Shown: positions 2,896 to 34,665, counted from the first letter of the stretch. The stretch is 49,238 nt of DNA from Girardia tigrina (GCA_001938485.1 MQRK01219511.1:1-49238), one strand, 5' to 3'. Made by a program: numbers and translations. Notes: generated by a model from the letters alone, not told the origin.

Positions 2896-4177
2896 TTGTG
2901 TTGGCCAAAAAGTCATTGTGTTTTTGAGTATGTCATAATAAAAAGCTTGTAAATATAAAACGATGTGATAAAATTTAAATTCAATTATATATTCTAAAAC
3001 CTTAATTTTCAGACTATGTTTATACAAAATATTAATTGATTTTGTTTTAATTTATTACTTTCCCGTCAATTCGAAATGGAAAATCAAAATGAGCATATTC
3101 GTCATGTTTTATTGCATTATTTTCGCAAAAGGAAAACCGCTGTGCAAGCTCATAAGAAGATATGTTTTGTATATGGTAGTGACTCCTTAAAACTTCGACA
3201 GTGTCAAATCTGGTTTTCTAAATTTCGTTCTGAAAAATTTCATCTGAAAGATGCACCACGTTCCGGTCGACCAGTTGAAGTTGACGGCGACAAAATAACA
3301 GCACTGTTCAAATCTAATCCACATATGACGACAAGAGAAGTTGCAGAGACTCTAGAAATATCAAAATCAAGTGTTGGAAGTCATTTAAAGAAACTTGGAT
3401 TCGTTAGTAAACTCGATATGTGGTTACCACATGAACTGAAAGAAATTCATTAGGTGAAACGTATAGACATTTGCGATTCCTTTTTGAAGCGAGAACAAAG
3501 TGATCCATTTTTGAAGCGCTTGATTACGGGTGACGAAAACTGGATTGTTCACAACAATGTGGAACGCCGATCATGGAAAAAACGTGATGAGCCTGCCAAA
3601 ACGATCCCAAAAGCAGAAATTCACCAAAAGAAGGTTATGCTTTCCGTCTGGTGGGATTTTAAAGAAATTGTGTTTTTTGAACTCCTTCTGAGGAATGAAA
3701 CCATCAATTCAGACAGATATTGTGGTCAGCTGGAGAAATTGACTCATTCAATTCAACAGGAACCTCCTGAATTGGCAAATCGAAAAGGAGTTGTAATTCA
3801 GCATGATAACGCAAGACCGCATACAAGTTTGAACACTCGCCAGAAACTCTGATCACTTAGTTGGGAGGTTTTGCCGCACTCATCGTATTCTCCAGACTTG
3901 GCCCCATCGAATTTTCACTTATTTAGATCACTGCAGAATTCCTTAAACAGAAAAAAACATTCGCCAGTGATGATGAAATGAAATGGTTCCTAGACGGCTT
4001 TTTTGCTGACAAAGGCAAAGGTTTTTATGAATCAGGAATAATGAAGCTACCGGAAAGGTAGAAGAAAGTGATTGAAAATAATGGACAGTATATCGTGTAA
4101 AAATATTTGTGTATCCATGTCATTTTTTGATAATAAATATTTTAGTAAAAAATGCAATGACTTTTTGGCCAACCCAA
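2896..4177 (+). mobile_element. Mariner element, probably mellifera subfamily, full length, defective
   Basis: ~30-bp TIRs TTG(T/G)GTTGGCCAAAAAGTCATTG. TA TSD at 2894-95 and 4178-79. Length 1282 bp, typical of mariners. Confidence 0.95.
3076..4100 (+). pseudogene. Mariner transposase pseudogene
   Basis: N-terminus MENQNEHIRHVLLHYFRK resembles Ammar1. Motifs WLPHEL, ITGDENW, HDNARPH and YSPDLAPSNF (third D to N). In-frame stops at 3451 and 3850, a frameshift near 3955 and a stop near 4059. Confidence 0.95.
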
Positions 4178-6865: not shown

Positions 6866-8511
6866 ATGGACCAAAGTCGACCACGTAAAAGAAAAGCATT
6901 AGACTTGAAAGAGAAATTCTCTATATTAGAAGATATGGACAAGGGGATAAAGAAAAATGAAATCGCCTCTCACTACAACATCCCTCCTAGTACTCTCTCC
7001 ACCATCATCAAGCAAAGAGAGGCTATTCTCTCTGAATGGGAAAATGTGGATCTACAGGACGCAAAAAACTGCGCTCAAGTCCAGTCGAAGATGTTGAGCA
7101 TGCTTTAGAAACATGGTTTACCCAGCAGCGGGCATTCAATATTCCAATCTCTGGTGTGATTCTTGCAGAGAAAGCGAGGGAATTCGCATGTGCTTTGAAA
7201 TTTCCAGACTTTAAAGCAAGCAATGGCTTCTTGGATCTCTTCAAAAAGAGGCATGAATTGACGTCCCGTACTGTGTCTGGAGAAGCTATGGGAGCTAATG
7301 AAGACGCTGCTATCGCATGGAGACAAAATGTATTCCCGACCTACATACAGTGTTACAATGAAAACGACATCTACAACGCTGATGAAACTGGTTTGTTTTA
7401 CTAATGTCTCCCCAACCAAACACTTGCTCTGAAAGGTGAAAAATACATTGGTGGAAAAATTAGCAAACGCAGAGTTACCATACTGCTCTGCACGAATATG
7501 ACAGGAACAGACAAAAGAAAATTGCTTCTTATTGGCAACTCTCAGAAACCATGCTGCTTCAAAAACATCAAAAAAGAATCTCTCCCCGTGACATATTGCA
7601 GTAACAGAAAAGCGTGGATGGATTCTGAGACATGGAAACAGTGGTTGAGCAAATTAGACGCCGATATGATGCGAGCTGGAAGAAAAGTGCTATTAATTGT
7701 GGATAATGTATCTAGCCACAAGACCTTAGCAGTCACAAACCTGCATGCCATTGAGCTTGCTTTCCTACCTCCCGCAACAACCAGCCATATTCAACCTCTA
7801 GATCAAGGTATTATAAAGACCTTCAAGACGATATACAGATCCAAAATTCTTCGCCGTCTTCTCCTTTTGGTGGAAGCAAAAAAGGATCTTCAGTCGTTTG
7901 GCCATAATCTTTGACTGTGTTCAACTTTCGTCTCGTGCTTGGAGTGAAGTGGATACACAGACAATCGTCAATTGTTTTCATAATGTTGGTTTCCAACACG
8001 ACCCATTTCCAGAAACAATTGATAATTCTGCTACAGGGACATCTGAATCCACTCTAAATGAGACTAGGAACATTTTCACATTCCTCGCCAACAACTTTGG
8101 AATGGANNNNNNNNNNGAGGACTTCTTGGGAGTGGACGAACTTGTGTCAACGGAAGGTATCCTTCAGGATTCCGAGATTCTCGAAAAGGTTGGTAAATAC
8201 TGTAACAGCATGTGTCAAATATTGTATGATGTCGTAATTTTTTGTTTCTGTAGATTCGTCCTGGCTCCTGTGTTGAGGATGAGCAATCAGATGGTGACGA
8301 TATGGAGGAAAACGTTCCACCCGTGATCCTTGCGTCTATGTTAGAAAGCTTGACTACACTTCGACGCTACTGTGCCGAGCGAGGACTGTACGTTTTACAA
8401 CCCTTGGAAATTGTAGAGAAGGCTGTGGCTACGAGTTACATATCTCGTCAGTCAAAAATAACCGATTTTTTCCCTATATCTACTAAAAATGATCATTTGG
8501 TGTTGTTTTGA
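6866..8511 (+). pseudogene. pogo/Tigger (CENP-B-like) transposase pseudogene, DD32D
   Basis: HTH_psq-like RKRKALDLKEK, CENP-B-type HTH (FKASNGFL), NADETGLFY, DNVSSH...QPLDQG with 32-aa spacing, and a C-terminal PIP-box-like QSKITDFF. Frameshifts near 7035 and 7900; stop at 7402. Confidence 0.93.
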
Positions 8512-11600: not shown

Positions 11601-12511
11601 CACGTTGACGGACAGTTGCGTCTATAGCCGTCAAGTTCAAGTTCACTATGTGACATGACGGCAATAGCCGTCCAATACGAAACGGTCGTTTTTAGACACT
11701 GCGGCTGTAGCAGCACAAATGTGCATTTACCAGCGTACAAGTAGAAGCCTAGTGTCATGTTTTCGAAAAAAAATTTAGTATGCAATGTCCTGCACCATGC
11801 TTTGAAACATGGCATACCGAAAATAATGTATAATAATTATAAAATTATAATAAATTTATTTGTCATTTATTTNNNNNNNNNNNNNNNNNNNNNNNNNNNN
11901 NNNNNNNNNNNNNNAAAAATACTTTGTTGCTCACAAAAAATTGTTTATTTCAGTCATTAAACCTGTCATTTACGTTTTTAAATTTTTGCTGTTATAGCCG
12001 CCATCGTCCCATTACATAGTGTCTAGAGTCCGCTGGTGCCATGACGGTTGTAGCCGCAACCTAATTAAAGGTGCTGAATTAATCAAAATTAAGTGTATTT
12101 AANNNNNNNNNNNNNNNNNNNNNNNNNNNNNNNNNNNNNNNNNNNNNNNNNNAATTATAATAAATTTATTTGTCATTTATTTATTTTTGTTTGATCATGA
12201 ACTAACATTTCGTGTAAAACTCCCAAAAATACTTTGTTGCTCACAAAAAATTGTTTATTTCAGTCATTAAACCTGTNNNNNNNNNNNNNNNNNNNNNNNN
12301 NNNNNNNNNNNNNNNNNNNNNNNNNNNNNNNNNNNNNNNNNNNNNNNNNNNNNNNNNNNNNNNNNNNNNNNNNNNNNNNNNNNNNNNAATTAATCAAAAT
12401 TAAGTGTATTTAAGCAGAAAGAGTAAAACTATACTTCTAATATTCTAAAAATTACAAAAACATATAGTGTCAATTTTCGAATTTCACTTGTTTCTACTGT
12501 CCGTCAACGTG
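11601..12511. mobile_element. Non-autonomous piggyBac-type MITE
   Basis: Perfect 16-bp TIRs CACGTTGACGGACAGT. TTAA TSD at 11597-600 and 12512-15. No coding capacity. The interior has repeated blocks and N gaps. Confidence 0.9.
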
Positions 12512-12723
12512 TTAAATTCTCATTTTAAATTAAAATCCTTTTAAATCCTAAAATTTATAAAACAAATTTTAATTAATAAAATTAAAAAAATTGTGAGCCG
12601 TCAAAAATGCTAACACGAGCGTAGAAATAAAAACAAGTTCATTTATTGAGAAAAATATATTTTGTAAAAGTAGAAAACACCAAAAATAATAATCAGAATC
12701 GTTTTGATAATTTAAAAAAATAT

Positions 12724-13047
12724 TCAATACATAAATTTCTCTAAAAGTACAAGTATTCCGCCTGTTAGACTCTGCACGACTAATATCGTTGAGTCGTCCT
12801 CAATATCGTAATATGTGAACAGTTTATCATCTTCCAAAACGAGATCTTGTAAGATAAACTTCACATTATCGGAATTGAACTTCCTCATATCAGATTCATA
12901 TTTTATATTCTCTACTTTTCGAAAGTACAATTTTTTCACTTCCAAAATCGACAGATTATTATTGAATTTTAGAAAGTATGTCTTACCGTTTGGTTTAATA
13001 TCTTTAAATCTCAAATTTAATTGATTATTGTTATTATTATCGGACAT
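12724..13047 (-). CDS. Single-domain ubiquitin-like protein with di-Gly motif and 10-aa C-terminal extension (107 aa)
   Basis: Intact intronless ORF from ATG at 13047. Ubiquitin-fold pattern GKTY.L, ILEVK, FILQDLVLEDDKLFTYYDIEDDSTILVV, then QSLTGG|ILVLLEKFMY. AATAAA on the minus strand at 12642-47. Confidence 0.85.
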   Translation of the reverse strand: MSDNNNNNQLNLRFKDIKPNGKTYFLKFNNNLSILEVKKLYFRKVENIKYESDMRKFNSDNVKFILQDLVLEDDKLFTYYDIEDDSTILVVQSLTGGILVLLEKFMY

Positions 13048-13669
13048 GTAAACAAACCAATTAGAGATTGTATTTATCAATTAAAACAAATCAATCAATA
13101 CGAGATAAATTTTTTGTTGCAAAAAGTTGCAAAACTTATTCTAAAATAGGAAATTATTTTTCAATAATATGCAAATAATTTTCTCTCGATATGGGAAATG
13201 ACTTTCTTAAACATTGTAAGTGATTCGTTTTCTTTAACCTCGATGGAATCCTAATGAAGAAATAGAATTGTTCAAACCTCAGAAAAATAAAAAAAAATCA
13301 TCTAAAAATAGGATAGAATTTGTCCCAACAGGTCGAAGATTTTTTTGAATCTCATGATGTTTAGCAAGAAATTAAAAATAATTAAAAAATATTTTAGAAA
13401 TTTATTTAAATATGAGACAATCCGTAGAAAAGATTTCATACATATATATCGTTCAAAAAGATTAAATATCTTTATCTCATAATCTGAACTAATTTGAACC
13501 AAAATATTCTTTCAAAAATATACAACATTCAAACATAAAACATCAACATTCCTCACAATGTGTATATATCAGTTGCCTGTTATATCGGTATCAGAATAAC
13601 AAAATATACATGACAATATTATTTTTTTGATATTACTAATTTTAGGACCATTTGGTGTCTAATCTCAGA

Positions 13670-13724
13670 GTAAAAGGGGGCCCTGGGCTGCAGCCCATAA
13701 AACCCGTGCCTAAATCCGGCACTG
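13670..13724 (-). mobile_element. Isolated hAT-like terminus
   Basis: Reverse complement reads CAGTGCCGGATTTAGGCACGGG..GGGCTGCAGCCCAGGGCCCC, like hAT MITE ends. No partner end found. Confidence 0.45.
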
Positions 13725-13889
13725 CAAACAGATATTACATTTTAATCACTTTTTTAATCGATTTCAATTCATCCCAAAATAAAACATTTCCCTAATCGAT
13801 TCAAAACACAATTTTTATCGAAACTATCAACTTAATCATCAACAATCACATACATTAACACATAAATTCAAATAAACGGCAAAATTTTA

Positions 13890-15300
13890 CCCGTTACCGT
13901 TTGCATCGATCTGGAATTCAATTGGAAGCCCTGCTAGTGGAGGAACCGAATTTAGAGTTTGTGGTAACACCGGACAACCCAGTTCCGCTAGAGATTTCTG
14001 CAAAAATTTAAATACTCAAATGCGAATAATTATTCATTACTGCTGTGTCATCAGTTTTGGAAAATCTGAGTGACTCATAGTGAATCAGCATGAATAATTT
14101 TCTCGCGACTCAGGATTTCACGAAGCACACGCTGTAATAACAGTAATAATAATCATCAATAGATATGTTGGTGTATTAAAGAGTGATAGAGTTTTTGAGT
14201 TAACAATAAATTAAAAACAAGAAGATTCTTTTTATAGAATATTTTTATTTATGTACAATTACAATTTGATATCTGAAGAATTACAATTCAATATTAACAA
14301 AAACTTAGCCTATTAATGATTTTGTATTTTAGATAGGGTGGGAAGAGGGAGTACTCTTGCCCACAGAAAAGTTTAAGGTATATTAAAAATATATTACGAG
14401 GAAAATAAATAAATGATATAAGTTCGCACTTTTTACTTTTTCTTTTCCGTTTTCAATTTCTCGTACTTTCTTTTTTTTTCTGTCTTTGATAGCTTTTATA
14501 TTTTGCTTTTATATTTTTCTATTTTTTGCGTGGTAGCAGTTGATATAATAACTTTCTTGTAGGTAGCCGTAGTTGATCTAATAACTTTCTTGTAGGTTTG
14601 TGACTACTCACGATAAAATTCTTTCTTGAACTTTAAATTAAGATATAANNNNNNNNNNNNNCTTTTTATAACTTTCTTCCTCTTTTATACTCTTTTTGGT
14701 CTTTTAAATTTTCTTTATTTATTCTTTAATAATTTTAATTATTACTTTCCTTTAAATATTCTAATTTTATTATTAAATTATTTACACATCTATTTGCTTT
14801 TATTCTTATTATTTATAAATATATTATATTTACTAAGATAAATAGGGTAAACAAAATTTATTTAACCCAATGATTTAAACAAAAATACAAAGATTTTACA
14901 TTCACAAATTCTTATACTTAACAGATAATCGAAAAATACTATAATCCAGGATTGTCTACAAACAGTAAAATGGTTTATGATAACCACGCAGGCTGCCAGT
15001 GACAAGAAATAATCGATAAATTTCTCTCACCAGTAGTGACTAGCTGAGAGAAATAAACAATGCAATCAGGCACTTGCAGAACTCACGTATACACTGCAAT
15101 AGGCAGTCAGTTAATTCTTCACGAATCATGAACTTCAGAAACAGAATTTCAATGAATGATAGGGGTAGAATACCAGTGCATGCGTATGAAATGTACACAC
15201 AACAAACACAAATAATCAACAATATCGCAACTGTAGAGAGAACCCGAAATCACCGAGCAACCTGAAGACATTACCTGATATAAATATGGCAGACATTCTT
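13890..15300 (-). pseudogene. Possible degenerate multi-exon gene, hydrophobic/membrane-protein-like, interrupted by a solo LTR
   Basis: Exon-like segments with AG/GT borders (KSLAELGCPVLPQTLNSVPPLAGLPIEFQIDANGNG at ~13890-13997; MLIHYESLRFSKTDDTA). Hydrophobic stretches continue across the LTR insertion. Stops present; no family recognised. Confidence 0.3.
14166..14923. mobile_element. Solo LTR (gypsy-like)
   Basis: TGTT...AACA termini with a 4-bp TSD GATA at 14162-65 and 14924-27. Internal ~30-bp tandem duplication near 14533-14597. Confidence 0.8.
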
Positions 15301-15777
15301 CACATACTGCACAAATATTTACTAAATGTATAAAAACATTTCAAATACATTCCAGGATCGTGCATATTGATAAATTGTAGTCTGTTGATTAAAATTCTTC
15401 TTTAAAATCAAAACAAAACATTTCAATTGATTCTAAATAGAATTTCATCAACAGCACAATATTCCACATTTGCATGTAGAAGTATGCATAATGAGAGAAA
15501 ATAACAATATCATTTCAAACATTTCTCTCATTAACACACTATCACCTTAAAGAGATACTTTCAATAATAATTCAGTACTAAAAGTGGTCTCTCAAAACAC
15601 TACTATTAAACGTAGTGATAAGTTTTATGTCAACTGAGAAGCACCGTTCTTCAGTCTCAATTAATTTAAGAGATATATAAATATGAATTATTATTTTAAT
15701 ATATTAATGATTATAAAGTTTATAAATTTTAAATATGTAGATTTTAAAAGGAAAAATTCTAAAGAAAAAAATACAAG

Positions 15778-16225
15778 TGTAACGTCCCACCGATGCGCAA
15801 ATTATTACTCCTTGCCAAGAACAACAATTAATCTCGGGGAAATCTTCTTCACGTTAACTTAGGATCGGAATTTAAATTCAATCTTCTCAACAGATTAGAT
15901 CAGAATTCAAGGTTCAATCTTCTCAATGAATTAAATCGGAATTCAGAAATCAACCTTCTAGATTTGGATCGGAATCTATGTAAAAAATAAAAGATGTGAC
16001 GCTTGTTATTTATTTGCCTGGCTTTTTATAATTCTACCAAAGCGCATGGCTCGCAAGAAAATATTGAAAACGCGTAGCTTAAGCGTATAAGAAAGATCGC
16101 GTGGCTCATGAGGGACGCGTAGATTGAAAACGCGTAGCGTAAAAGAAGTATACTGCCACCGCAAAAACAAAAATACGCGGCCACCGCAATGGACGCACTA
16201 TGCGTGACAAGGGCGCATAGTGCGT
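15778..16225. repeat. LTR-like segment with internal repeats and a terminal hairpin
   Basis: Starts TGTAACG and has CGTGACA at 16203-09. About three ~33-bp ATC(G/A)GAATT..TCAA(T/C)CTTCT units (15863-15976), clustered CGCGT(A/G)G motifs, and a perfect 12-bp inverted repeat at 16193-16225. No TSD. Confidence 0.45.
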
Positions 16226-16841
16226 AACGAAATATAATAATAATTTCAATAAGATTTTAAATAAATAATATATATAAAATTTAAATTTATTTTAAATAAA
16301 ATTATAAATAACAAATATAACTAAAATTTATAACAAAAACATAAAACCAAATATAATAATAAAAAACAAGGCATAAATAATAAGGTAAATTCACATAATA
16401 AATTAATAATATTTACATAACTGAAATTTATCAAAAGGAAAATAAAATAATAAAATTCACACAACAAAATTATATTTTATATAACACCAACATATTTTTA
16501 CTCTACATTTTTTTCAAATTAAAAAAATAATAAACTATTTTGGTGAAACATAAATTTAAACTAACCCCTCATATGGTGAACGATATTCGGAGATCTTCCA
16601 GCAGAATAGTGTATTTTATCGTTTCGCGATTAATTTAATTAATTTATTTTATTTATTTAAATTACTTGTTTATTTTTTTAATTTAATGATTTTATTTAAT
16701 TTATTTATTTTAATTTAATTGCTTTATTCACATTTACTTTTATTTATTGAATTTACAAAATGGGCTGAAGTAAGAGTCAAAGGAAATCTCAACACGAACA
16801 CCGAGTACGATTTAGTTTTATTTGTGGTGTGATTCCCAACC

Positions 16842-17502
16842 TGTATCGTGAATCTAACCTATAACTTTGTTCAGTACTAGTAAATAAATCTATAATAATA
16901 ATGTAACTAAATGATTATCGTTTATTTCGCCAAAAAACTTATTTTCTACAATTAATAAATAATCGAATCTTAAGAGCAAATGTCATTGTGGGGGTGATGT
17001 GGATCACGCCATCAATGTGTGTTACTCCGGGTTATCGTCATTTACTAGCGTTATGAGGCATTGAATTTATGTTAAGATACCCAACTTCTAAAGAGTTTAA
17101 TTTAATATAATTTTCGTAATTTAAATCGTTAACGTATTTATATTGGTTCTAATAATCATGTCTTAATTTCTTAAATCATATAATTCCAATTATAATAATA
17201 ATTAAACGTTGCATTGGATATCGAAGGTGATGTTCAGTGTTCCGTCGTGGCCCGTACATTCGGCACAATGGTTATTTGTCTTTGAGATAGCGTATTGTGA
17301 ATAAAGTAGCTGAAGAAATATATCCCATAGACACTGAGTCACAGACCCGGCCGTACTCGTTGTTGGTTTGAACCCGAAGACAACTCGAAGTTTGGCATTA
17401 TTTGTAGATGTAAAATGGAGAGTCCTAGTTCACTGGAACAGCCTAATTGTGAACCGGTCGAGGACAGAAATAATAGAAGATTTTGAAGGGTGGTACCCGA
17501 CA
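16842..17502. mobile_element. Divergent LTR-like element (copy E of the structured-terminus family)
   Basis: TGT...CGACA ends. Contains CTGAG..TACTCGTT..GGTTTGAACCCGAAG (17335-17380), shared with copies A-D. Flanks share ACC(T), an imperfect TSD. Confidence 0.55.
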
Positions 17503-18940
17503 ACCTGTGGGCTCAGGGCCTTGAGTAACGAATTGAGAACTTAGTTTTCATATCTCCAAAAACTTGACTTGACAGATATAATGAAAAAATTTTGTAAAAA
17601 ATATAGTTTTATATCAGAATCATATGATCTGCAAATAGTTGAAAATAATGAAGATCGAAAATTCCGAGCCCTAAACAGTGTTAAGACCAATTCTGTTTCC
17701 ATTGAGCATACCCTTAAGAACATGGTCGCACTAACTTTCAAGCTAATTGGTATTACAACAGAAATCGAAAGCGCTAATACAGAATCAGCAAGGGGTATTC
17801 TTGAAGCCTATGAAGAACTGATCTATTGACGTTCTGGTGTCCAGTTCTCAGAAGCCACCTAGCTTTTCAAAGCATTGAAGGAGGCTTTTCGGAGTTTCTT
17901 ATCTGGATTACAAATGTGAAGTCTCTAACTATCTTCTTCAGGACATTTAAAAGACAACGAAACTCCAACATCATTTTTAGCCCGATGGTGAAACATTTCC
18001 CTGCTCAATACAAAGTTTGATTTGTGGAGAACATAGTCAACCTTTTAACGGTTATCCATCATGATCTTCACAGTTGCACGGAAGTTTAGAAGTTTTTAGA
18101 AGTGGAAGTCGAATCAAAAACCGAGAGAGCAATAGCATGGGGATATTTGAAGACATTGGTGTATGAATCGCAGCAAGTTTGGCTTACTGGTATCATAGTT
18201 GATATTTTGAAAATATTTCATGATTTGCAAAAGCATGTATAGCTTAGCAACCTAATTCTACCAGAGGTAATAAGCAATAGAGATAAGGTACTTAGTAAAT
18301 TAGACTTTTTATCCAAAGCCCTCTATCCTGGTGGAGAGGAAGAGAAATTATAGCCAACAGGAAACAGAAACTCCACTTTAAGAGCTGTCAACATGAATGT
18401 GCTAACCACAGTAAATCATGATGCGGTGCGCCTCGAAATTGTACAATCGGCATATAATTATCTTATAGAGTGGTTTGATGTGGATCAAGAAGTAATCCGA
18501 GACATGTTAGCTGTTTTGCAAACAGCATAATTCAAAGCATTTATTATGGAAGAAGTGAAAATAATATGTTTGTTTCCAGAAGAATTCCAGGCTTGGAAAT
18601 ACTTTACCCACAATGACGTTGAAAACTTTGCTTCAGCTCTGCAGCGGTGTAATTTAAAAAGTAATATTGTCTTAGGAAACACTCACTCCTTACATCATGC
18701 TTGCAGAGAGACTTGTTTCTTTATACAACTTGAATTTTTAATCACATCGCATGAACATCTCAGCTGAGAGAGCCATCTCTTCCATCATGATCGGAATGAA
18801 TGACGAGGGGACATGTCTGTTTGATCCTCGCAGTACTGTGGTAGAGTTTTTATGGGTTGAAAAAAGTCGAGAAAGAAACCAAACCCTGGGTATTTCTTTA
18901 GAAAGAGACTTTGTTGCAAATTCTTTTTCCAAAAAGTAAC
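17503..18940 (+). pseudogene. hAT (ZNF862-like) transposase relic
   Basis: LIGITT..SANT..G (DG.S.N.G region), FWCPVLRSHLAF (CxxH region) and a dimerisation-like SAERAISSIM..N.EG..FDPR..VVEFL. Many stops. Confidence 0.65.
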
Positions 18941-19094
18941 AGGAGTTGATGTGTCGTGTAATATAACACGTGTTGAGCTGTTGAAAAAATGTTATGGGTC
19001 AGGTCACTTGTGCATGTTCTTTTAAACTTGAGAACACTTGATAAACAAACTGTTCGAAATAGGAAAAACCATTATAAAAACAGGAACAAATAAC

Positions 19095-20193
19095 TGTTAC
19101 GACACGAATACGATTATATGACACTGAGAAAACCCTACTTCACGTACAACATCCAGCACGCATGAAAACCTTGTCGAGAGTTTGAAGGGATAATCAAATT
19201 ATTCTTTCCCTTCCTTTCCTTTTCATCTATTTTTTCCCTTCAATCATTCCGTTTAATCACTTTATTATTTAATTAATTATTTAAATTAACCCGCTCCATG
19301 TGGTCCTTTTATTTAATTTATACGTAGTAATATGTTGTTTTGCATTTTCTTTTGAGTGGGATTTTAAAATAAATAATCTTTCGGATATCTATACATGCGG
19401 ACGTTTGTATTCAACTTTTGGTTATACAAGTTATTAGTTACAATTATCTATGACAATTGAGAGCAAGACTACGAACCATAATCCATAACATGAATTTAAA
19501 CTCAGCAAAGTACAAGAATGGCACGAGCTTAAAAGTCGAGGAGCATAAAATAACATGAGCTTAAAATCAGAAGAGAAAAGATGATAGGAATTGAGAATCA
19601 GGCTAAAAGGAGACAAGAGTACGAAAGCCGAAAGTGGTATAAACGAACATGAGACTGACGAGAGTGAATGTAAACTCATATGTAAACTTGAACACATATA
19701 TTAGATTTAGATAAAATAATTAATTTCAATTCAAGATTGGCAAATGCAGTGACATATTTATAACGTTGTGAGGGATTTAATGGATTCGAGTATTAAAATA
19801 ACGGCACATGGTTGACTGAGGCGAGGAACCTTCTGGAGGTGACGCAGGCCGACCGCAGAATACGAGGGGCACGCGGATTGTCCGAGGTTTACTTCCTTAG
19901 GGCTCTCTTCGTCCAATATAACTAATAACAAATATTCAAACAACAATAAAAGTTTAATATCAGCCCCGTCGGATACTGAGACCACCAGTCGGGCAATACT
20001 AGTTACTGGTTTGAACCCGAAGGCGCTCCAAAGCGCATACAATTTGTTTGTATACGTGGAGGAGTGCGTCTGTTCCCTTAACAGTGGATAATTACCGAGA
20101 GGAATACGACGTACATGGGAGTTACCATTGAACTCTAAAACTGATGGGGGCTCTGAGTCCACGAAAATGTTGTCGAGAAAGGGTAACACGACA
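19095..20193. mobile_element. Solo-LTR-like element, short form (copy A)
   Basis: TGTTACGA...CACGACA ends with a 4-bp TSD TAAC at 19091-94 and 20194-97. Conserved terminal block at 19820-20193. Confidence 0.88.
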
Positions 20194-20532
20194 TAACTGT
20201 TTTCCACCGAAAAAAGTTACTGTATTTTGGCACATGACCATTCCAGATTGCTTGTGCTACGAGTGAATATTTTTGAAAGAAAGCCTTGTCATATAAGATA
20301 CATATTAAATACATCATGTACACCAACTTATCACCTGGTATTTAGTACGTCCAAAATTGTGCCAAAGTTATAAATCAACGTTGAATATTCACTATTTTTT
20401 CGATCCAAACTTTAATAAAAATTAGAAATGTTTCGCAAAACGTATGTTGTACAAATCTTGTTATAATTAATACAAAAAAACTTTATTCATAAAAACAAAA
20501 TAACGTTAAAACTTGCCGATTTACAAAGCAGT

Positions 20533-21804
20533 TCATTTAGGTAACATGTTAATAGTATCTTCCTCATCAATATCGTAATATGATAATTTCTCGTCATCAT
20601 TTAAAATAATGCTATTAAATATAAATTGAATTCTGTTGGAATCGGTGTTCTGTTTGTTCATTTTCTTTATCAATTCCGATTTCACTTTCGAGATTATAGC
20701 GTCTCTGAATACCGTCATTTTATAAGATTTTGATGAATAAACGTCTCTGAAGAAAATCGAAACACTAGGGATATGTTTCGTCTTCAAAACGACCATTATA
20801 ATATCTCCATCGGAAATATTGTAATGTGATAATGTGTCAACGTCTATCAATAATTTTCCTTGAAAAACTAAATCTAAATTATTTGTATCAAATTGTCTGT
20901 TGTCGCTATTTATTTTTTTTAACAACTCCGATTTTGCGTACGAAATCAATCCAGTTTTGGGTAAACTTAACGTATATAGTGTTGATGAACGTATTTCTTT
21001 GAAACTAACTGAAATATGTTCGATATGTTTCATCTTCATAACAACCATTACTGTGTCTTCATCACCGATATTATAATGCAACAGTGTTCTATCATCATTT
21101 AATAAAGTTCCTTGAAAAACTAAAGCCATATCAGAATCAAAGCCTCTTTTTACGATATCATCACGTATTATTTTCAACAACGCCGATTTCACATTTGACA
21201 CAACAGTATTTTCTGGTAAATTTAATTCATAAACCTTTAATGATTTTGTTTCTTTAAGGAAAAATGTAATGCTTCTAACACTCTTAATTTTCCTGACCAT
21301 AATCACCAAATCTCTGTCGTTGATATCGTAATACGACAATGTCTTATCATTGGCCAATAAAGTTCCTTGAAAAACTAAATCAAATGTTTCACTTTTAAAG
21401 TTTCTTTGATCATTACTCATTACCTTTTCTAATTCCGATTTTACGTAGGATATTAAATTCGTGTTCATGAATGATAATGTATAAGTTTTAGTTGAGGTAA
21501 TTTCTCGGAAATTGAGTGAAACATCATTAGATGTTATAATTTTATTGATCATTATTATCGTATCACCATCGCCGATTTCGTACGACAAGAGCGATTCACT
21601 GTCGATCAATACATTTCCTTGAAAAATCAACACCAGTATATCATAAGTTAACTTACTATCAGTAATACTCATTTTAGTAATTAATTCTGATTTTAAATTC
21701 CGTACTAAGCTATTGTAAGGTAAATTTACCGAGTACACTTTATTTGAACTTCTTTCGCTTAGAAAAAGATTAATATTTTTGTTACTGTTCTGTCTTGAAG
21801 TCAT
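20533..21804 (-). CDS. Penta-ubiquitin-like tandem protein lacking di-Gly motifs (423 aa from first ATG)
   Basis: Uninterrupted ORF with five ~84-aa repeats. Each has a KS(E/A)L helix and an LVFQG.LL.D..TL..Y.I.D.D-like motif (more diverged in repeat 5) matching ubiquitin LIFAGKQLEDGRTLSDYNI. AATAAA on the minus strand at 20482-87. The ORF-track start at 21834 is GTG within a GTGAGT donor-like site. Confidence 0.92.
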   Translation of the reverse strand: MTSRQNSNKNINLFLSERSSNKVYSVNLPYNSLVRNLKSELITKMSITDSKLTYDILVLIFQGNVLIDSESLLSYEIGDGDTIIMINKIITSNDVSLNFREITSTKTYTLSFMNTNLISYVKSELEKVMSNDQRNFKSETFDLVFQGTLLANDKTLSYYDINDRDLVIMVRKIKSVRSITFFLKETKSLKVYELNLPENTVVSNVKSALLKIIRDDIVKRGFDSDMALVFQGTLLNDDRTLLHYNIGDEDTVMVVMKMKHIEHISVSFKEIRSSTLYTLSLPKTGLISYAKSELLKKINSDNRQFDTNNLDLVFQGKLLIDVDTLSHYNISDGDIIMVVLKTKHIPSVSIFFRDVYSSKSYKMTVFRDAIISKVKSELIKKMNKQNTDSNRIQFIFNSIILNDDEKLSYYDIDEEDTINMLPK

Positions 21805-23917
21805 AAATACGGACTGATCATTTAATCTACTCACATAATATTATTGTTTATTTCTAAATTTGATAATTGGTATTAACACGCACATTTTAGTAAACAATAA
21901 AACTGACTCGTATCATATATTTCAAATCAATTAAAGAAAAATTAAATGATCTTTATTAAAAATCTCTGATTTCCTTGTTATTTCATTTTCATTATTATAT
22001 GATATCGTGGAACCAAATTTAGAAAATAATAAATTATTTTGTATTTGTTGATTTGTTAATAAATGTGAAATTTTAAACAAACGATTTTTGAGATATTAAA
22101 TATTACTTGAAAAATCAATAATTAATTTTAAAATAATAATTAATTAATTTTGCTTAATTAACTTGGATAAATTTTACAATTTTGAAAAAAATATATTTAA
22201 AATAATTTTTTTCAATGTTTGTTTATAATTTTTTTTGACTGAATCAATAAATTTAAAATTAGAGAAAATTTTTAGTTGATTTAGATTATTAGGCAAACTA
22301 ATTTGAAAAATTATGTATCTACTTATAATTGTCGGAAAATTCAAATTTGAAATGAGTTTCGAATCGAAATAAAAAATTACATTGTCGACGGATAGTTTAC
22401 TGAACGAGTCGATGAAAAATTGTAACAATTAAACACTTTCGTTTTGTATTATGAATTTAATAGAGTATAACTTGACCGCTTTTTATTAGCGAAATAAAAC
22501 AGCAAATACCCAGCTCTTCAAAGAAATGTTTATTAACCATAAAGTTTATGGCATAAACGAGTTATTAAATATTCAAGTGATCTGAATTTTCAATCGATTG
22601 TTCATTTAATTCACGAATGTTATAATAGTGTCAATGAAGTACATTTGTCAAATGGTCGATGTAGTTAAAAATATCAAGTTTTTTCTCAGTCTTTCCGATT
22701 CTAATTCGTAATATCTCTATCCGATGGCACCATAAACTCGTTCGGCAGTTGTGGTGTGTTTGTTTATGTATCATTTGTGTAATTAGCGTGTCTGCCACTT
22801 ACAGTATTATCAAATTCCGAAATCATAATTTAACACCACAAAATTTATTTAAATTTATTTCATAAATTTTATTAAAATATATCGATTGTTATTACTGTAA
22901 GCATATTTTAAATAAGTATTTATTTTTATCATATTTTTACTCTAAATTTTAGTTTTTTAATTTATTTCTTTTAAATTTTCAAATTAAAAAATAAAAAACT
23001 ATTCTGACGAACCTTAAATTTAAACTAACCCCTTATAATTTGAATTTTAATATTTTATTCACAAAAAGTGTCATCTACACAAACCAGTCAGGAAGAGTCA
23101 ATATGGATTACGACAAAAAATAACAGACAGAGCACATACACATCCTATATGACACCCGATTACACCACCTTATCGAGAGAAAAATACTTGTAAACAAAGA
23201 TTTGCATTTCACAGTCAAATGACACACATAATTTTCAAAGCAATTTTCATACAATTTTAATACTACAAATCCGGACCACAGAATTTTGAGATTCAATTTT
23301 CCTTTCAACGACATCATTTTATTAAAATTTTTGTGAACCGTTCTAGCGTGCAAGAATATCATTTTAATCGGTGAAAAATCTTACCATCGACGTTCTACAC
23401 CAGTATCATTCCAGAAGTGCTCTAATTCAACTGCTAATTGTATCCAGCAAACCTAGATGGCTATATCATTTTGGTTATATCATATAATCACTAGGACCCT
23501 TTATAACTAAAACACTATCACTAAGGCGCTTAATCATTAAGAATCTTAATCACTAGACGTCTATTCACGTAATCCATTAATTAATGTTCAAACAAGCCTC
23601 TGTTCTATTTTGTTAAAAATATTCTATTAGTTATTACACAATTTAATTACACAATCACAATATAAATAAATAAATAAGGAGGTGCAATTATTGATTAAAT
23701 AAATTACTTAATTTTTAAAAGTAAGTGGGATGTTTCCATTTATTTTTTAATTTAAAATTTTTCAAAAATCGTTCTCCTTTATATGACGGAGAAAAAAGTG
23801 AAATTCAGCAAAACGTCAAAAAACAACTGCTTCATAATGAATTAAAAATTTTATCAAAATTGAAAAATAAATAAAATCAGATGTTTTAATAAAAAAATTT
23901 AATATAACAGCTATATA

Positions 23918-27603: not shown

Positions 27604-29997
27604 TGTTACGATAGAGATTCCGGACTTTCCCAATATTGACGTCATTCCACATGCAAGGAACCTTAAAAAAAACAAAAAGTTGGTCATAGTTTGGTTCGAC
27701 TATAACCGTTATGTTTAAATAGGTCTCAGGAGCATGTGAAACGACAGACGAAACTGAGAGGCCCGTTGCCCTACGTATTCGTGATGAGAGACGTTGAGAT
27801 TGACCATTAGCTAAGAAAAAACGAATTTATTAAAATTGAAAACCCCGAGAAGACCATAAGAGCTCACCTGAAGGTAACAGAAGCCGGAAAAAAGGGTCCA
27901 GACGAAGGTTATTGATAACCGAATACTCACAGTCCCAGGAGGAGCCGGAAAACGTTACTGCGGGCACCTGAGAAACCCTTGAAAGGATCTAAAAAATAAA
28001 GACAAAGTTAAAACTAATTAAGAAAGTTAATTAAAAATACCGTGATTCATGATGAATCAACCCTCATACGAATTGCAGACAGTTGTGGAGACGAAATCCT
28101 AGATAAACAATGGTTAAACGTCCGACATCATGGAATAAATCACACCGCCCATGTAAACCATCTGTCAGAACAACATGATAAGTCGGCGTGCGGATTACCC
28201 AAAGCTGCAACTGAAATCATTAAGAAACATAAATCACCGAAAACCCCCGTTGTCTCCGATAAACAACAGTCATGATTGTTCACGAAGGATTTGATTAACA
28301 TCGCAACATATATGTGCATTTCGAGATGCGAAGTGACTCCCGTTTGCAGTAATTGGAAATGCTACATCCGTGAAGCAAGGACGTTGAGGTAAATGGAGGT
28401 ATAAACTGACGGAATAACATAGTCGCAGTCAAATAAACAATCAGAGAAACTATCATTAAACTTCCAACTAATAGGCACACGGGCTAAACACACAGAAAGG
28501 AAGACCGACTGTGCCGAATAATTCAATATCACTGCAGGGTATAAATACAAGAAATACAAGAAATGTATCTTAATGAGAAACACACAGTTTTACAGCGCAC
28601 ATAGTTTTATTTTACGAAAAATTTATACGAGTGATAGTCTTTACGACAATTTAATTTTACGCAAATTTTATTTCAAAAATTATATACGAATTTTATCAGA
28701 AATTGTATACGAACCTTAATCCAAAGCTATTCGTACAAAGATTAAACACTAAACCCATTTACGGAGCCGACGAAATCTTATAACGATCATTATTTATCAA
28801 ATCGTACATTTTCATTGGATGTACGTTCGCTATTCGTTGTGTAACCTTTTAATTCCTTCCGATAAAAATTTTCTATACTTTTATTTTATGTTATTGATCA
28901 ATTAAATATGCGATTTTTAGTTATTGTTATTTTTAATATACTTGATTAAAATATTTTGTCTCATCATTTTGACTCAAATATTCTGGTATTATAATGTAGT
29001 ATGCCAAATGGGAATGTCTTTCCGAGGCGGAATTTTAATAAACCTACAGTAAAATTTATTTTATTTTTACATAAATTATTTTTTTACATTAAATTTGCAA
29101 AATCTTAATTTTAACATCATATCTTAACATATCATATTCAACTGATATTTTTTCATATTAAATCGATATTTTTTTCATATTAAATACAAAATTTTTTCAT
29201 ATTAAATATTAATATCAATCAGAGTTCCTAACGATGTATGACATTCTTCGATATTCCGTTGTGAGGTCCCGTATGTCAAATTGAAATCTTTAATTAAAAT
29301 TCTAAAGTTCAAAATTTCGGATAAAATTATTAATATTCGATCGATGTTTATAAAATCAAAGTCTTAATCTCTAAAATCAAATAAAGGACTATAATTCCAT
29401 GGCAGTTTAGATGTAAGGTTCACGTATTAAAGATATTAAGAACAAGCATTTATTATTTATATCATTGCTTCTCCGTACTTTCACTAAAACTATCATCAGT
29501 TGTCATGAGTAAGATGTCAAATTATATGAATTATAAAATATAATCGAGTTAAAACATAATGGAGCATAGACACGAGTTGAACATAATTACGAGTAATAAT
29601 TGAGTCTCTGTCTGGGGCGAAAAACTTTGGGGAGGTGACGCAGGCTGGCCGCAGAATGCAAGGGGCACGCAGACTGACCGTTGTTTGCTTCCTGGGAGCT
29701 CTCTTCGTCTTACCTAAATAATGTAATTTGAAATGTAAGCTTTAGTCAGAATTAATATCATCCCCTCAGAAGTTGAGTTACCAGTCGGGCCATACTCGGT
29801 ACTGGTAGAGAACCCGAAGGCGCTCCAACGTACACACAACGTGTTGATGTGAGTGAAGGAGACGCGTCTGTTCCCGTGTTTATTGAATCGATGAATTATT
29901 GAGAGGAGTCAGAGATAAGTATGAGTTGCCGTTCAAATCAGAAAACGGATGGGGGCTCAGAGCTTGCAAAAATGTTGTTAGAGGAGGGATCATGACA
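27604..29997. mobile_element. Long-form (2.4 kb) TG..CA element (copy B)
   Basis: TGTTACGATAGAG...CATGACA ends with a 4-bp TSD CATC at 27600-03 and 29998-30001. TATA-like GGGTATAAATA at 28537. Conserved terminal block at 29616-29997. Confidence 0.82.
29032..29219. repeat. AT-rich dispersed repeat, inverted near-copy of 41154-41321
   Basis: AATTTTAATAAACCTACAGTAAAATTTATTTT... is the reverse complement of the 41.2-41.3-kb sequence. The core TGTATTTAATATGAAAAAATATCAATT recurs at ~42741 and ~48172. Confidence 0.85.
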
Positions 29998-30226: not shown

Positions 30227-31322
30227 TGTCATGTATGATTTATGACCTGGTTGAAAAATGCAGAGAATAATTGAACTTGAACAAGAATTTAAAACATGGG
30301 TTTTCTAGACAAGTTTACAATGAAATAATAGCGAAATAATAGAGCAAACCGAGACAAAAAATTTAGTCGAGCTTGGTTGGTAACTTCGTCTGCAATTTGA
30401 GGCATAGTAGGTTGAAGTGAGGGTATTGCTGAGGAAAGTGAGAAGGGTAGAGTTAGTTAAACTGCTACTTCATACAAATCGTAAAGAGTAGAGCATTTGA
30501 GCAGGTGGAAATCTAGTGGAAACTGTGGTCAGGGAGAGTAGAGAGTAGACAAGCGAGAGCGAGATGTAGGGGTGTCGAGTGAGTCGTAGTCTTGGGTGAT
30601 TAACGTCGGTCGAGAGAGTATGGATGAGTGTTAGAGGTAACTAATGGAGCTAGTATTGATTCTAACGAACGTGTGGTTGACGAGAATAGAATGAGGCGAC
30701 GAGCAGTGAATATTGACTGAGAATTGCAAAGTAAAATGGAACAATGTAAATAAAACAAGTGAGTGAAAGGAATTAAATAAAATGACAAATGAATAAAATA
30801 AAATGAATAAAAGTTAAAACTCCTGTCTAAAATCAAGCTAAAATCTACTCAAAGACTAAAATAGACTAATCATCGGTAATATCGCGAATAAGATAAAGAG
30901 TTAAATACGTTAAAATGTTGTGATATAAACAAAAGTTATTGGAGAACGGCGAAGAACCTTCTGGAGGTGATGAAGGTAGACCGCAGTATGTAAAGGGCAC
31001 GCGGTTTGATCGTTGCTTACTTCCTTGAGACTCTCTTCGTCCGTCATAATCAAAATTAAAATTTTAAACAATCATGGAAAACGATATCGACCCATCAGAA
31101 GCTGAGACCACCTGTCGTGCAACACTCGTTACTGGTTCGAACCCGAAGGCGCTCAAAAGCATACACAACTTGTTGATGTGCGCGGAGGAGGCGCGTCTGT
31201 TCCCCCAAACAAGGAATAATTATCGAGAGGAATATGCAGTACATAAGAGTTGCCGTTGAACTCTAAAAACGGATAGGGGCTCTGAGTCAACAAAAATGTT
31301 GTCGAGAGGAGGGAACATGACA
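30227..31322. mobile_element. Solo-LTR-like element, short form (copy C)
   Basis: TGTCATG...CATGACA ends; 1096 bp versus 1099 bp for copy A, with a similar left end. Conserved block at 30948-31322. The TSD does not match (CTAG vs TCAT). Confidence 0.7.
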
Positions 31323-33417
31323 TCATGTTTGCTATTTTTTATTTTTAACTCGTTATGAGTTATTGTCTTTTCAAATAATTTTTCATATCCACGGGTCGAT
31401 ACATTAAGAGGACACCTTGGACGAACGATATACAGTGAAAAGTCGTCGAAAAGACAATTTTAGTGAAATTTTTTATAAATTGAAAATTTGTGAACAATTA
31501 CAATAATAACATCAAAATTTACCAAATTGGAGACAAATCGCGAGATGAAATTCAACATCGACAATTGGGTGTCAATCGACGTTGCAATGTTTAACGTTCA
31601 ATTAAAAGTTGAATAATTAAACAACTACATTTTGACGGTTGCGAAATCCTAGGAAAAAACATGAAAATTATTGAAAAAATATTTCGTTAATAAATTAAAT
31701 TAATATTAAGTTTAAATCAATTTTGGTGATGAAATTTAGATAAAAACTTTTACAAATAATAAACTAATTTTGACGAAAAGAGTGAATTTTAAAAAGAATT
31801 GAGTCAAATTGAGTGATTTTAACGATAATTTCAATGAAATTAACAAGAATGATAAAAGTAAATGAAAAATTTATTACAAATTCATCGATAATAAAGAAAA
31901 TTAGTAAAAACAATAAATATCATAGTTATTATGAAAAATAACAATAATATCTGAGGTTTCCAAAACCAATCCTCAGGCCAATTTTTGCGTCGGAACTTTT
32001 GTACAATAGATTTTTCAAGTAATTAATTTCAGCACGATAGCGAAGGAAAGCCTGAAATCACGATAAACCAGTATTTCAAATGTATGCAAGATGGGTAATG
32101 AAATAAAACATTAAATTTCGGCAAAAATTGACTCACCCGAAAAGATATAAATCCTAAGGATCTTAAAATTTCATCTGATGGCGAGAGATCTGAGATAAAG
32201 AATATTAAATTCATAAAAAATAAAAGTAAAAATCTAACCTGAGAGATTTTTCTTGGTAGTGAAACAGTACACCAACTGACGTTATGAATAATAACCGACA
32301 CACCTACCTGGCATATGATAAAATGATCCCTGCTATGACCAAATAAGGACTTGAAGGGTAGAGAAAAATAAACATACATTATGGGGACCACAAAACATGT
32401 ATTTATTTGGACAGTTTGAAACACAACCCTGGTAGAAAATTGGTATAAACACAGAGCAATTTTCAGTCAAAATCACACTTAAAATCACACTGAAAAATCT
32501 GATTAAAACTCACGTAATGAGTTGTAAAATGACTTAAAAGGTTGGTTCTATTAAAATTAGACTGAGAGAGGGACTGAGTGTTACTCTCTATCTCGAGTCC
32601 AGTAATGCTGAGGAGTGATTAAATTGATGAATGGTTGGACGATGATGGTATTGATGTTATGACAAGATGAAATTTGAAGAACTAAAATATATTTTCAAAA
32701 ATTGGGAAAGTTATTGTTACTCAATTTTAGTGAGAAAATAATATGAACTCGAATATCCTTGGGTAGGATATTAACTAATATCATCATTACAACTTATATA
32801 TCTCAAGGTTTAACTTGACTTGCGATTCGTCAAAGTCAAGATAAGTTCCTCATCTGGGAGTATAAGGACGAGAACACGTCCGAAAGACTTCATGTAAGAG
32901 CACAGTCTCGTAGTCGAACTTGCGATCTGTTGAACTCTTTTATGACTGGTAGGGTCAAAAAATCATTTATATCATTTAGTAATAAATTAAAGATTAAAAC
33001 GATTTGTAATTAAATGTAATGAAAGTGAAAATTGATTTTGTTGGTTAAATATATAATGAGATAAAAATTGTGTCTTAAATACTAGCATCTTCAAGATCAT
33101 CGACGCGACTTGGCATAAAATAGATATATTTCCACCGGAGGATTTGCGTGACAGGGTATTCGAGATCTCTATTAAAAGTGGTTTTAAATCTTAAAATTAA
33201 ATCAGTTACGATAAAGATAGTAGATCTGCAATTCTAAATCTTATTAAAATCATACTCACGAGAGCTGAGTTGGCATATCTGGTCATAGACCTGTGTAGGT
33301 CTGGAATCCGGAAGGTCCTCATCACCTGCCACTACTTGCAGATGACAAGCGGTGAGAGGCAAGTTGAGACTTTACCGAACGAAGGGGATAATATCAGTGA
33401 ACATGTAATTATAATTT

Positions 33418-34665
33418 ATGGGTGGTTACCTATCGCCTGGGGGCTCAAAGCCAATTAGATCAGTTCCCAAAAATGTTAGAAACTATATCGACCTCAACAC
33501 TGTACAGACAATGAAAACAAGAATTAATGTAATTTCTGTGAATTCGGCCGCAGTGATATGTACTATATCTGAAAATTTATCAGATTCTATCATTTTAGGT
33601 TTGCCGATGAAAAATGCTTTAAAGAGAACATTAAATAGAGAAAAGAAGAATATTTTATCTAATTTAATGATACATTAATCCACATCTGATTTAAATTTTG
33701 ATATGCCGAATGATTTCAATGATATGCTTTTATACGATTCTGGTTCAGGTAGTGATCATTTTCTTTTATTTGGAGCAAGAGATTTATTGAGTGGACTGTC
33801 TCATGCTAAACTGTGACTTGCCGATGGAACCTTTAAATTAGTTTCATCGTTGTTTTTCCAGTTATATATTATTTGCTTCAAACTTCCTACTGGTATAAAT
33901 CCTGTTGGAGTTTATTGTTTATTGCCCAACAAAACCCAGGTAATTTATGAAACAATTTTGCGTGAAATTAAAACTATAATTCCGAATGCTGCCCCAGAAC
34001 ATTTTTTGATTGATTTTGAGAAGGCGACAATTGATGAATTCCAAAAAGCTTTTGCAAGAATAATTGTAGATGGGTGTTATTTCCATTTAACACAAAATGT
34101 TTACCGAATAGTTAAAGAAATTGGTACGAAACAAGATTACAATGAGAGAGATGATATTAGATGTGCTGTAAGATGTTTGCCTGTTTTAGCTTTGGTTCCA
34201 ATTAATGAAGTAGATGATGCTTTTTTCGAACTTGCTGGTGTAATGCCTCAACATGAAAAAATGGGAGAACTGCTATCGTATTTCGAGCATACCTATATCA
34301 GAGGTAGGAGGCGTGTTGGCAGAATTGGAGTTTATAATCCATCCTTATTGCCCATCGTAATATGGAATAATTTTGAATCTGCCTACGAGAGAATTGCAAA
34401 AACTACAAATAGTATTGAGGGATGGCATTTCGGTCTTAAATCTCTCTTTCAGCACCATCATTCGTCATTATAGAACTTTTTATAGGAATAAGGAAGAATT
34501 TAAAAATTCAGAAAACAAGTAACCTACACGGAATTTCAGGAAATTCACCACATTTACCAAAAAAATATCGAATTTTAAAACAGAGAGTTATTGAGGCCAT
34601 TTGTCGTTATTCTGCAAGTGAAAAGCTATTATATTTGCTTGGTGTTGCAGACTTATCCACTAATA
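33418..34665 (+). pseudogene. Mutator-like (MULE) transposase pseudogene
   Basis: ADGTFKLV..FFQLYII, YCLLPNKTQ..YE, IDFEKA, GCYFHLTQ, YFEHTYI, TTNSIEGWH. Stops at 33676, ~33814 and 34471. Confidence 0.9.

Follow-up and report, generated by a model that had tools for sequence, protein, structure and literature searches.

The stretch of DNA analyzed here, which we refer to as the window, is a 49,238-nucleotide segment of Girardia tigrina (GCA_001938485.1 MQRK01219511.1:1-49238). It is AT-rich (~31% GC) and carries on its minus strand two intronless genes for ubiquitin-like (UBL) proteins: a short one with a single UBL domain, named sUBL, and a longer one with five such domains, named penta-UBL. 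The coding sequences were obtained by an open reading frame (ORF) scan from the first ATG, and the domains of penta-UBL were delimited by alignment and scored with leave-one-out hidden Markov models (HMM):

12724..13047, minus strand: sUBL coding sequence, 107 aa plus stop, one ubiquitin-like domain
20533..21804, minus strand: penta-UBL coding sequence, 423 aa plus stop, five head-to-tail UBL domains, no Gly-Gly (GG)
21541..21804, minus strand: penta-UBL domain 1, aa 1-88, leave-one-out HMM score 62.5 bits
21286..21540, minus strand: penta-UBL domain 2, aa 89-173, the nearest to sUBL (32% identity), 92.8 bits
21025..21285, minus strand: penta-UBL domain 3, aa 174-260, 83.2 bits
20770..21024, minus strand: penta-UBL domain 4, aa 261-345, 88.5 bits
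20536..20769, minus strand: penta-UBL domain 5, aa 346-423, ending at strand 5 (…INMLPK; DSSP) without a tail, 66.1 bits

Both frames are uninterrupted, and an in-frame stop lies about 10-12 codons upstream of each ATG. Since this stop is so close to the ATG and the first UBL strand begins at about residue 9-10 in both proteins, each ORF holds its whole domain set. The initial annotation had reported two intact minus-strand ORFs, and both were recovered at these positions with neither frame crossing an assembly gap.

By profile comparison and predicted fold, both proteins are members of the ubiquitin family. They exceeded the gathering cut-off of Pfam PF00240 (25.4 bits), with 35.2 bits (E 1.1e-8) for sUBL and 128.3 bits in five stretches for penta-UBL. 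Their further Pfam matches were to UBL-clan families on the same stretches, and no other domain was found in either protein. A profile of the six domains searched against the PDB placed ubiquitin first, at ~34 bits per domain and ahead of the ubiquilin UBL, and SUMO, NEDD8 and ISG15 were not preferred. The AlphaFold2 (AF2) model of sUBL, with a predicted local distance difference test (pLDDT) score of 81.8, has the element order of the beta-grasp fold, the loop 49-58 being of low confidence. With this model, a Foldseek search of the PDB gave ubiquitin and ubiquitin variants as the best matches, with template modeling (TM) scores of 0.86-0.91 on the target (best matches 0.87). For penta-UBL, the AF2 model (pLDDT 83.4) comprises five confident beta-grasp units separated by linkers of 4-6 residues; its predicted TM score (pTM) of 0.33 implies no confident mutual arrangement of the five domains. 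Taken together, these results agree with the ubiquitin-like nature first proposed for the two genes. A SUMO-like assignment (PF11976) was rejected, because sUBL scored 17.4 bits, under the cut-off of 23.8 bits, penta-UBL scored 81.8 bits, less than its own 128.3 bits with PF00240, and the PDB search favored ubiquitin. The T-G-G end of sUBL resembles that of SUMO only superficially.

The five stretches matched by PF00240, together with the translation, also bear out the five-domain, GG-less organization attributed to the second gene. At the DNA level, penta-UBL shows an internal period of 252-255 nt. Its domains are 30-50% identical to one another and 21-34% identical to ubiquitin, and no GG is present anywhere in the 423 aa of the translation, so that GG-directed peptidases cannot release its domains. 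The C-terminus of sUBL, which had been described as LTGG plus ten residues, was confirmed as LTGG followed by ILVLLEKFMY and the stop codon:

12757..12768, minus strand: codons L94-T95-G96-G97 of sUBL, aligned without gaps to ubiquitin L73-R74-G75-G76
12727..12756, minus strand: ten-residue hydrophobic extension ILVLLEKFMY after the GG (translation)

Residues were mapped on a ubiquitin reference (P0003:1-76). The alignment of sUBL has no gaps from Ub-42 to Ub-76, and G96-G97 therefore falls exactly on G75-G76. Residues 93-107, which form the tail, are of low confidence in the AF2 model (pLDDT 66 and 53 per block). Type I UBLs (ubiquitin, NEDD8, SUMO, ISG15) are cleaved after GG and then conjugated, and UBLs without GG cannot be conjugated. 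In sUBL, as in this type, the GG stands in a predicted flexible C-terminal tail and is followed by a short extension, whereas penta-UBL has no such end. Ubiquitin Arg72 and Arg74 are replaced in sUBL by Ser and Thr, respectively; Arg72 of ubiquitin is needed by the ubiquitin E1. HMMER aligned the GG-ILVLL of sUBL to the GG-MQIFV of polyubiquitin, that is, to the first strand of the next ubiquitin repeat. A weak idea suggested by this alignment is that ILVLLEK could be what remains of a second repeat, now lost, in line with a descent of the family from a cleavable array. The last Lys or Arg ahead of the GG in sUBL is K75, so that a tryptic remnant would have 22 residues, unsuited to the usual K-GG antibody workflow. 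Two other possibilities for these termini were discarded: the tail as a membrane anchor, since ten residues are too short and no CAAX box is present, and secretion of either protein, both N-termini being hydrophilic.

The initial annotation had grouped the two genes on shared motifs, and these motifs were confirmed. Tyr at Ub-13 (Ile in ubiquitin) is present in all six, and Gln at Ub-46 (Ala in ubiquitin) in five of them, domain 5 having Asn. The loop between helix 1 and strand 3 is longer in every domain, the distance from K27 to F45 being 20-27 residues vs. 17 in ubiquitin. Within this loop, the motif R.F.S(D/E) is exact in sUBL and in domains 2 and 3, and nearly so in domain 4 (R.F.T.N); YYDI is found in sUBL and in domains 2 and 5. 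Ubiquitin Lys63 is replaced by Asp or Glu throughout, Lys48 is kept in one domain only, and K27, L50, Y59 and I61, core residues of ubiquitin, do not vary across the six domains. Measured on a background of 338 unique UBL domains, Tyr13 has a frequency of 5.9%, Gln46 of 0.3% and the long loop of ~9%. Neither R.F.[ST][DE] in the loop nor Tyr13 combined with Gln46 occurred in any background domain (0/338 for both).

To search for relatives, an exhaustive HMMER search was run with penta-UBL alone as the query on 1.84 billion representative proteins (E ≤ 1e-3). It returned 703 matches, the best at 200 bits and 30% identity. Among the best 150 of the 703, on which all statements about library matches below are based, the top matches were polyubiquitins (MQIFVKT…LRGG repeats) and other multi-UBL proteins. 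On these proteins the family profile reached at most 33 bits, the level of ubiquitin, compared with 62-93 bits for the penta-UBL domains and 41 bits for sUBL (leave-one-out). Word-index searches were without matches whether the query was penta-UBL, sUBL or the alignment of the six domains, and scans of viral (IMG/VR) and metagenome contigs with both proteins gave no relative. No orthologue in which the GG of sUBL could be compared was found in any collection searched. sUBL and penta-UBL are thus apparently lineage-restricted, with no orthologue detectable in the libraries searched. A limit to this orphan status comes from exact look-ups of both proteins and ten other ORFs of the window. None of the 14 sequences compared had an entry in the collection and no transcripts turned up, so the libraries may simply lack the source genome and its relatives.

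One further protein, P0017 (Logan SRR29367400, L001 180-2252), is 690 aa long, has eight GG-less UBL domains and comes from a transcript-like contig of 2.3 kb and 28.6% GC. It has Tyr13 and the long helix 1-strand 3 loop without Gln46, and its domains stand beside those of the window in trees. P0017 may be a distant relative, or its position may reflect convergence or a long-branch effect. A literature search found no description of such a gene pair and no mention of the accession behind P0017.

Plain identity fails to show a special kinship between the two genes, since sUBL is about equally close to the penta-UBL domains (26-32%) and to ubiquitin (29%). We therefore rely on a rank test and on the rare characters above. 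An HMM built from the five penta-UBL domains only was compared with sUBL and with 552 UBL domains taken from the library matches. sUBL ranked first of the 553 with 41.3 bits, the best background domain scoring 39.1 bits and the median being 26.9 bits. The test is conservative, because the background had been chosen for its similarity to penta-UBL. BLASTP aligned sUBL with penta-UBL domain 2 at 32% identity (E 8e-9), and a phmmer search with sUBL gave domain 2 and domain 5 as the best matches, four of the five best being penta-UBL domains. That the genes form one family, as had been claimed, is consistent with sUBL and the penta-UBL domains being mutual best matches among 553-557 UBL domains, although by a small margin. 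In a quick tree of 76 rows, the six domains of the window formed a clade with a support of 82 in the Shimodaira-Hasegawa-like approximate likelihood ratio test (SH-aLRT), next to the domains of P0017. A careful tree of 38 rows separated the ubiquitin-like domains from the window and P0017 domains taken together (100/99). At the DNA level, only 22-46 nt at the YYDI motif could be aligned between the two genes and their flanks are unlike, which points to an old duplication. A recent segmental duplication was rejected, since the flanks share only low-complexity matches. Overall, sUBL and penta-UBL are likely, though not proven, to be paralogues, and the head-to-tail arrangement of domains suggests that they derive from an array of the polyubiquitin type.

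We also evaluated whether the two frames are maintained. Given the local composition, one codon in 12-13 should be a stop. The probability of an open frame is ~8e-16 over 423 codons and 1.5e-4 per site over 107 codons, and the next longest stop-to-stop frame in the window has 218 codons. The openness of sUBL alone is thus weak evidence, and for this gene the argument is carried by its complete and confidently folded UBL domain. Between domains, the proportion of synonymous differences (pS) is 0.56-0.88, at or near saturation, and that of nonsynonymous differences (pN) is 0.29-0.49. The divergence of the repeats is therefore old. That the open frame, the core of the fold and the limits of the domains have nonetheless been kept argues for purifying selection at least on penta-UBL. 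By these measures, the two ORFs are real and related genes, apparently kept by selection. This bears on a different explanation, in which one or both ORFs would be non-functional leftovers, decaying polyubiquitin-derived or retroposed copies still open by chance. Both genes lack introns although genes of this genome can be split (see the lectin exons described below), their neighborhood is rich in repeats, neither an orthologue nor a database record was found, and an open frame of 107 codons is only weakly improbable; moreover, the public GG-less multi-UBL "proteins" may partly be pseudogene calls. Such a history is nevertheless hard to reconcile with a 423-codon frame that is open at 30-50% repeat identity, saturated pS and pN below pS, with core residues of ubiquitin that are invariant in the six domains, all of which have confident predicted folds, and with ORFs that each start ~10 codons from an upstream stop and hold a whole domain set. 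In addition, an AATAAA follows each stop codon:

12642..12647, minus strand: AATAAA, possible polyadenylation signal of sUBL, ~80 nt past the stop, a weak indication in AT-rich DNA
20482..20487, minus strand: AATAAA, possible polyadenylation signal of penta-UBL, ~50 nt past the stop

We consider it improbable that either ORF is such a leftover.

The reading that we favor, with somewhat better than even confidence, is that the two genes represent a paralogous, strongly diverged and apparently lineage-restricted branch of the ubiquitin family, penta-UBL being a fused protein and sUBL a potential modifier precursor. Several observations weigh against it. Neither exact protein, in two start variants each, is present in a collection of 15 billion sequences, and the best 150 of the 703 matches would not include any single-domain relatives of ~36-60 bits. 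The lead of sUBL over the best background domain is only ~2 bits, and its 35 bits on the generic PF00240 are nearly its 41 bits on the penta-UBL profile. The phylogeny proposed in the initial annotation is of mixed outcome: the clade of the 76-row tree stands, whereas the 38-row tree leaves the six domains unresolved at its center, with a branch of 2.48 for sUBL. As the trees do not settle the matter, the kinship rests on the rank and rare-character tests. Concerning the role of sUBL as a precursor, Arg72 is Ser, the GG is lost in every paralogous domain, and a ten-residue tail of such hydrophobicity is unusual in a UBL propeptide. Finally, no E1/E2-like ORF was detected in the window by ORF scans, which are insensitive to spliced genes, and such genes need not be linked.

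With family, predicted fold, kinship and frame preservation documented as above, the expression, processing, conjugation and partners of the two proteins are what we infer from here on. penta-UBL would be made as a single polypeptide in which linkers of 4-6 residues connect the five beta-grasp domains. Its domains would be neither released nor conjugated by GG-directed enzymes, and the protein would act whole, through non-covalent contacts. For sUBL, a peptidase would trim the precursor after the GG, and an E1/E2 cascade would then attach it to targets. We regard this trimming and conjugation of sUBL as possible but clearly the less probable outcome. The GG could just as well be a leftover from an ancestor that is no longer used, in which case sUBL would, like penta-UBL, act through non-covalent contacts.

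That second option is part of a broader alternative, according to which both proteins would be non-conjugated, as type II UBLs are, and would bind non-covalently, e.g., to partners resembling those of the proteasome or of ubiquitin receptors. The absence of GG from five of the six domains, the loss of Arg72 in sUBL and the lack of an E1/E2 candidate nearby are all consistent with this alternative, and the match of ILVLLEK to the first strand of the next repeat means that the tail may be a repeat vestige and not a propeptide. Regarding the hydrophobic patch, Ub-44 (Ile/Val) and Ub-70 (Val/Ile/Leu) are kept, His68 is replaced by hydrophobic residues and Leu8 by Ile or Val in four domains, so that a hydrophobic binding patch may persist. 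However, the GG of sUBL has stayed at the exact site and in a predicted flexible tail after synonymous saturation; two residues could be retained without selection, although this is not what one would assume by default. Moreover, downstream of the sUBL stop, no trace of a second repeat was detected by a six-frame profile search. A non-conjugated role for both proteins is unlikely on this evidence, although it is a serious competitor of the branch with a potential modifier precursor that we favor.

A more far-reaching reading would be a lineage-specific conjugation system, in which an E1/E2, either dedicated to it or borrowed, would join sUBL to substrates once the part beyond G97 has been removed. 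The neighboring penta-UBL would be a genetically fixed, non-hydrolysable linear chain of the same subfamily, competing for, or scaffolding, the readers of the tag, perhaps in stress or defense. We consider this scheme speculative and quite improbable. The initial annotation had inferred a modifier system with a linear-chain mimic or decoy. The residues that ubiquitin receptors read are, however, only partly kept, Lys63 being acidic in all six domains, the charged residues that are read by chain-specific receptors are lost, and mimicry of true linear ubiquitin chains by penta-UBL is doubtful.

We compared the two proteins with known systems. Polyubiquitin of the UBB/UBC type shares the Pfam family and the fold with them and gave the best sequence and structure matches. 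As in polyubiquitin, the repeats of penta-UBL follow one another head to tail with short junctions and nothing else in the protein, and the coding region has no introns; sUBL resembles the last polyubiquitin repeat in having its GG at G75-G76 followed by extra residues. By contrast, polyubiquitin has near-identical repeats that end in RGG and are cleaved to monomers. penta-UBL was therefore rejected as a polyubiquitin precursor, its repeats being divergent (30-50% identity) and its junctions GG-less. The domains of the window also differ from ubiquitin itself in their identity of only ~21-34%, in a loop after helix 1 that is longer by 3-10 residues, in the presence of Lys48 in one domain and of Lys63 in none, and in the loss of Arg72 in sUBL.

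ISG15 and FAT10 are vertebrate-restricted and fast-evolving tandem-UBL modifiers, and ISG15 is made with a C-terminal extension after its GG. The proteins of the window are similarly lineage-restricted and ubiquitin-derived, and the fused UBL domains of penta-UBL are likewise not cleaved apart. However, ISG15 and FAT10 combine two domains and a GG on one chain, whereas here the GG is on the separate single-domain sUBL and none is on penta-UBL. Assignment to the ISG15/FAT10 type was rejected, as penta-UBL has five domains ending in …INMLPK, sUBL has one, and no affinity beyond the general family was found.

In RIG-I signaling, the UBL repeats of OASL stand in for polyubiquitin. OASL carries two such repeats at its C-terminus (PMC4351405). 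Like them, the tandem repeats of penta-UBL are part of an intact and, by its lack of GG, non-conjugated protein; those of OASL are joined to an OAS-like domain, whereas penta-UBL is nothing but five UBL domains. More generally, type II adaptors (RAD23, ubiquilin, OASL) combine a UBL with other domains, and the two proteins were not assigned to them since neither has another Pfam domain; both may nonetheless work like UBL-domain adaptors. Tandem Ubl domains within one protein are also known from the prokaryotic polyUbl proteins (Iyer, Burroughs & Aravind 2006, PMC1779556), which are bacterial, have two to three domains and are encoded in operons with E1-, E2- and JAB-like genes (PMC1779556). 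The locus described here differs in being eukaryotic and in having no E1-, E2- or JAB-like neighbors.

Among the best 150 library matches, 144 proteins have at least three UBL domains; in 45 of these no domain is followed by GG, and in 46 only some are. The named GG-less ones are "hypothetical" or "uncharacterized" plant proteins (e.g., KAL5722886.1, KAJ0612801.1 and XP_059650856.1), and some of these public predictions may be pseudogene calls. None of the GG-less multi-UBL predictions has Tyr13 with Gln46 or R.F.S(D/E), and none has been functionally characterized. The architecture of penta-UBL is therefore not new, being common among uncharacterized predictions. What is specific to this locus is the side-by-side position of two members of one small subfamily, a pentamer that lacks GG and a monomer that has it.

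The known ubiquitin-like modifiers fall into only about a dozen families, and the lineage-restricted ISG15 and FAT10 proved important in defense. If conjugated, sUBL would be an additional modifier, specific to invertebrates, and would provide a natural pair of tag and mimic for studying chain readers. If it is not, the locus would show a polyubiquitin-type array losing its cleavage sites and persisting as a fused multi-UBL protein, a GG-less class that is common in predicted proteomes (the 45 of 144 above) and essentially unstudied. A new GG-bearing UBL next door to a non-cleavable multi-domain paralogue is a cheap and clear candidate to test.

Between the two genes lies an assembly gap:

14649..14661, no strand: assembly gap of 13 N between the genes, part of neither (sequence)

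This gap is located in low-complexity, AT-rich intergenic DNA, 1.6 kb away from the sUBL ATG on its 5' side and 5.9 kb away from the penta-UBL stop on its 3' side, and the only ORF that overlaps it is a low-complexity one on the plus strand. The 7.5 kb spacing of the two genes and their linkage on the same scaffold rest on this join being correct. Other runs of N are at 11873-11914, 12103-12152 and 12277-12387, the nearest starting 337 nt beyond the sUBL stop. Just 3' of sUBL, at 11843-12413, stretches that are 100% identical occur at a spacing of 310/311 nt, interleaved with these three runs, which looks like an assembly overlap or a duplication artefact. An Rfam scan of the window gave no match, and a six-frame profile search revealed no further UBL copy or pseudogene in it.

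The description of the two genes as lying among decayed transposable elements holds in part: dispersed repeats adjoin them, but the recognizable transposase ORFs are farther off, at 1-8, 33-34 and 46-48 kb. A repeat of ~380 nt at 19813-20202, which has copies at 29609-29978 and 30948-31330 with 72-77% identity, begins ~330 nt past the penta-UBL stop and holds an ORF of 149 aa (19758-20207) without a Pfam match. Captured ubiquitin genes occur in baculoviruses and some transposons, and the two genes could in principle have been carried in by a mobile element or by an integrated virus that had captured a ubiquitin gene. Their intronless and AT-rich character, the surrounding transposon debris and the dispersed repeat 330 nt past penta-UBL would be compatible with such an origin. 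Nevertheless, neither gene is flanked on both sides by terminal inverted or long direct repeats, the two flanks share nothing, each gene is present in one copy in the window, and the IMG/VR viral contigs contained no relative. A cargo origin is in our view very improbable.

The initial annotation had further suggested an immune-related role given a nearby lectin. About five tandem C-type lectin domains are indeed present on the minus strand at ~36.9-39.7 kb (36900-39700), each encoded by three short exons (F.EA..YC… / YWIDGND..EG.W.D / EPNG..ENC..WND..C) tens of nt apart. Scored singly, the third exons matched PF00059 with E values from 6.5e-4 to 0.02, just below the Pfam cut-off, and their EPN motif suggests a mannose-type sugar binding. 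This array is ~15 kb from penta-UBL, with repeats and the remnant of a Mutator-like element (MULE) in between, and the immune suggestion is unsupported, as there are no shared flanks and no sign of co-regulation.

The decayed transposon ORFs of the window comprise a Tc1-like one (HTH_Tnp_Tc3_2 and DDE_3), a Mos1-type mariner with an internal stop, a pogo/Tigger-like one (HTH_Tnp_Tc5 and DDE_1) broken by a run of N, the MULE remnant, a second pogo-like copy and a zinc-knuckle (gag-like) ORF; their coordinates are, in this order, 1041-1992, 3076-3852, 7036-8326, 33850-34473, 46256-47592 and 48268-48513. With these transposase remnants and its AT-rich composition, the window has the look of invertebrate nuclear DNA. 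In addition, a repeat of ~62 nt is present in three copies with 85-87% identity (16511-16573, 22976-23037 and 48981-49041), one of them 1.2 kb upstream of penta-UBL, and is possibly a miniature inverted-repeat transposable element (MITE) or a transposon end.

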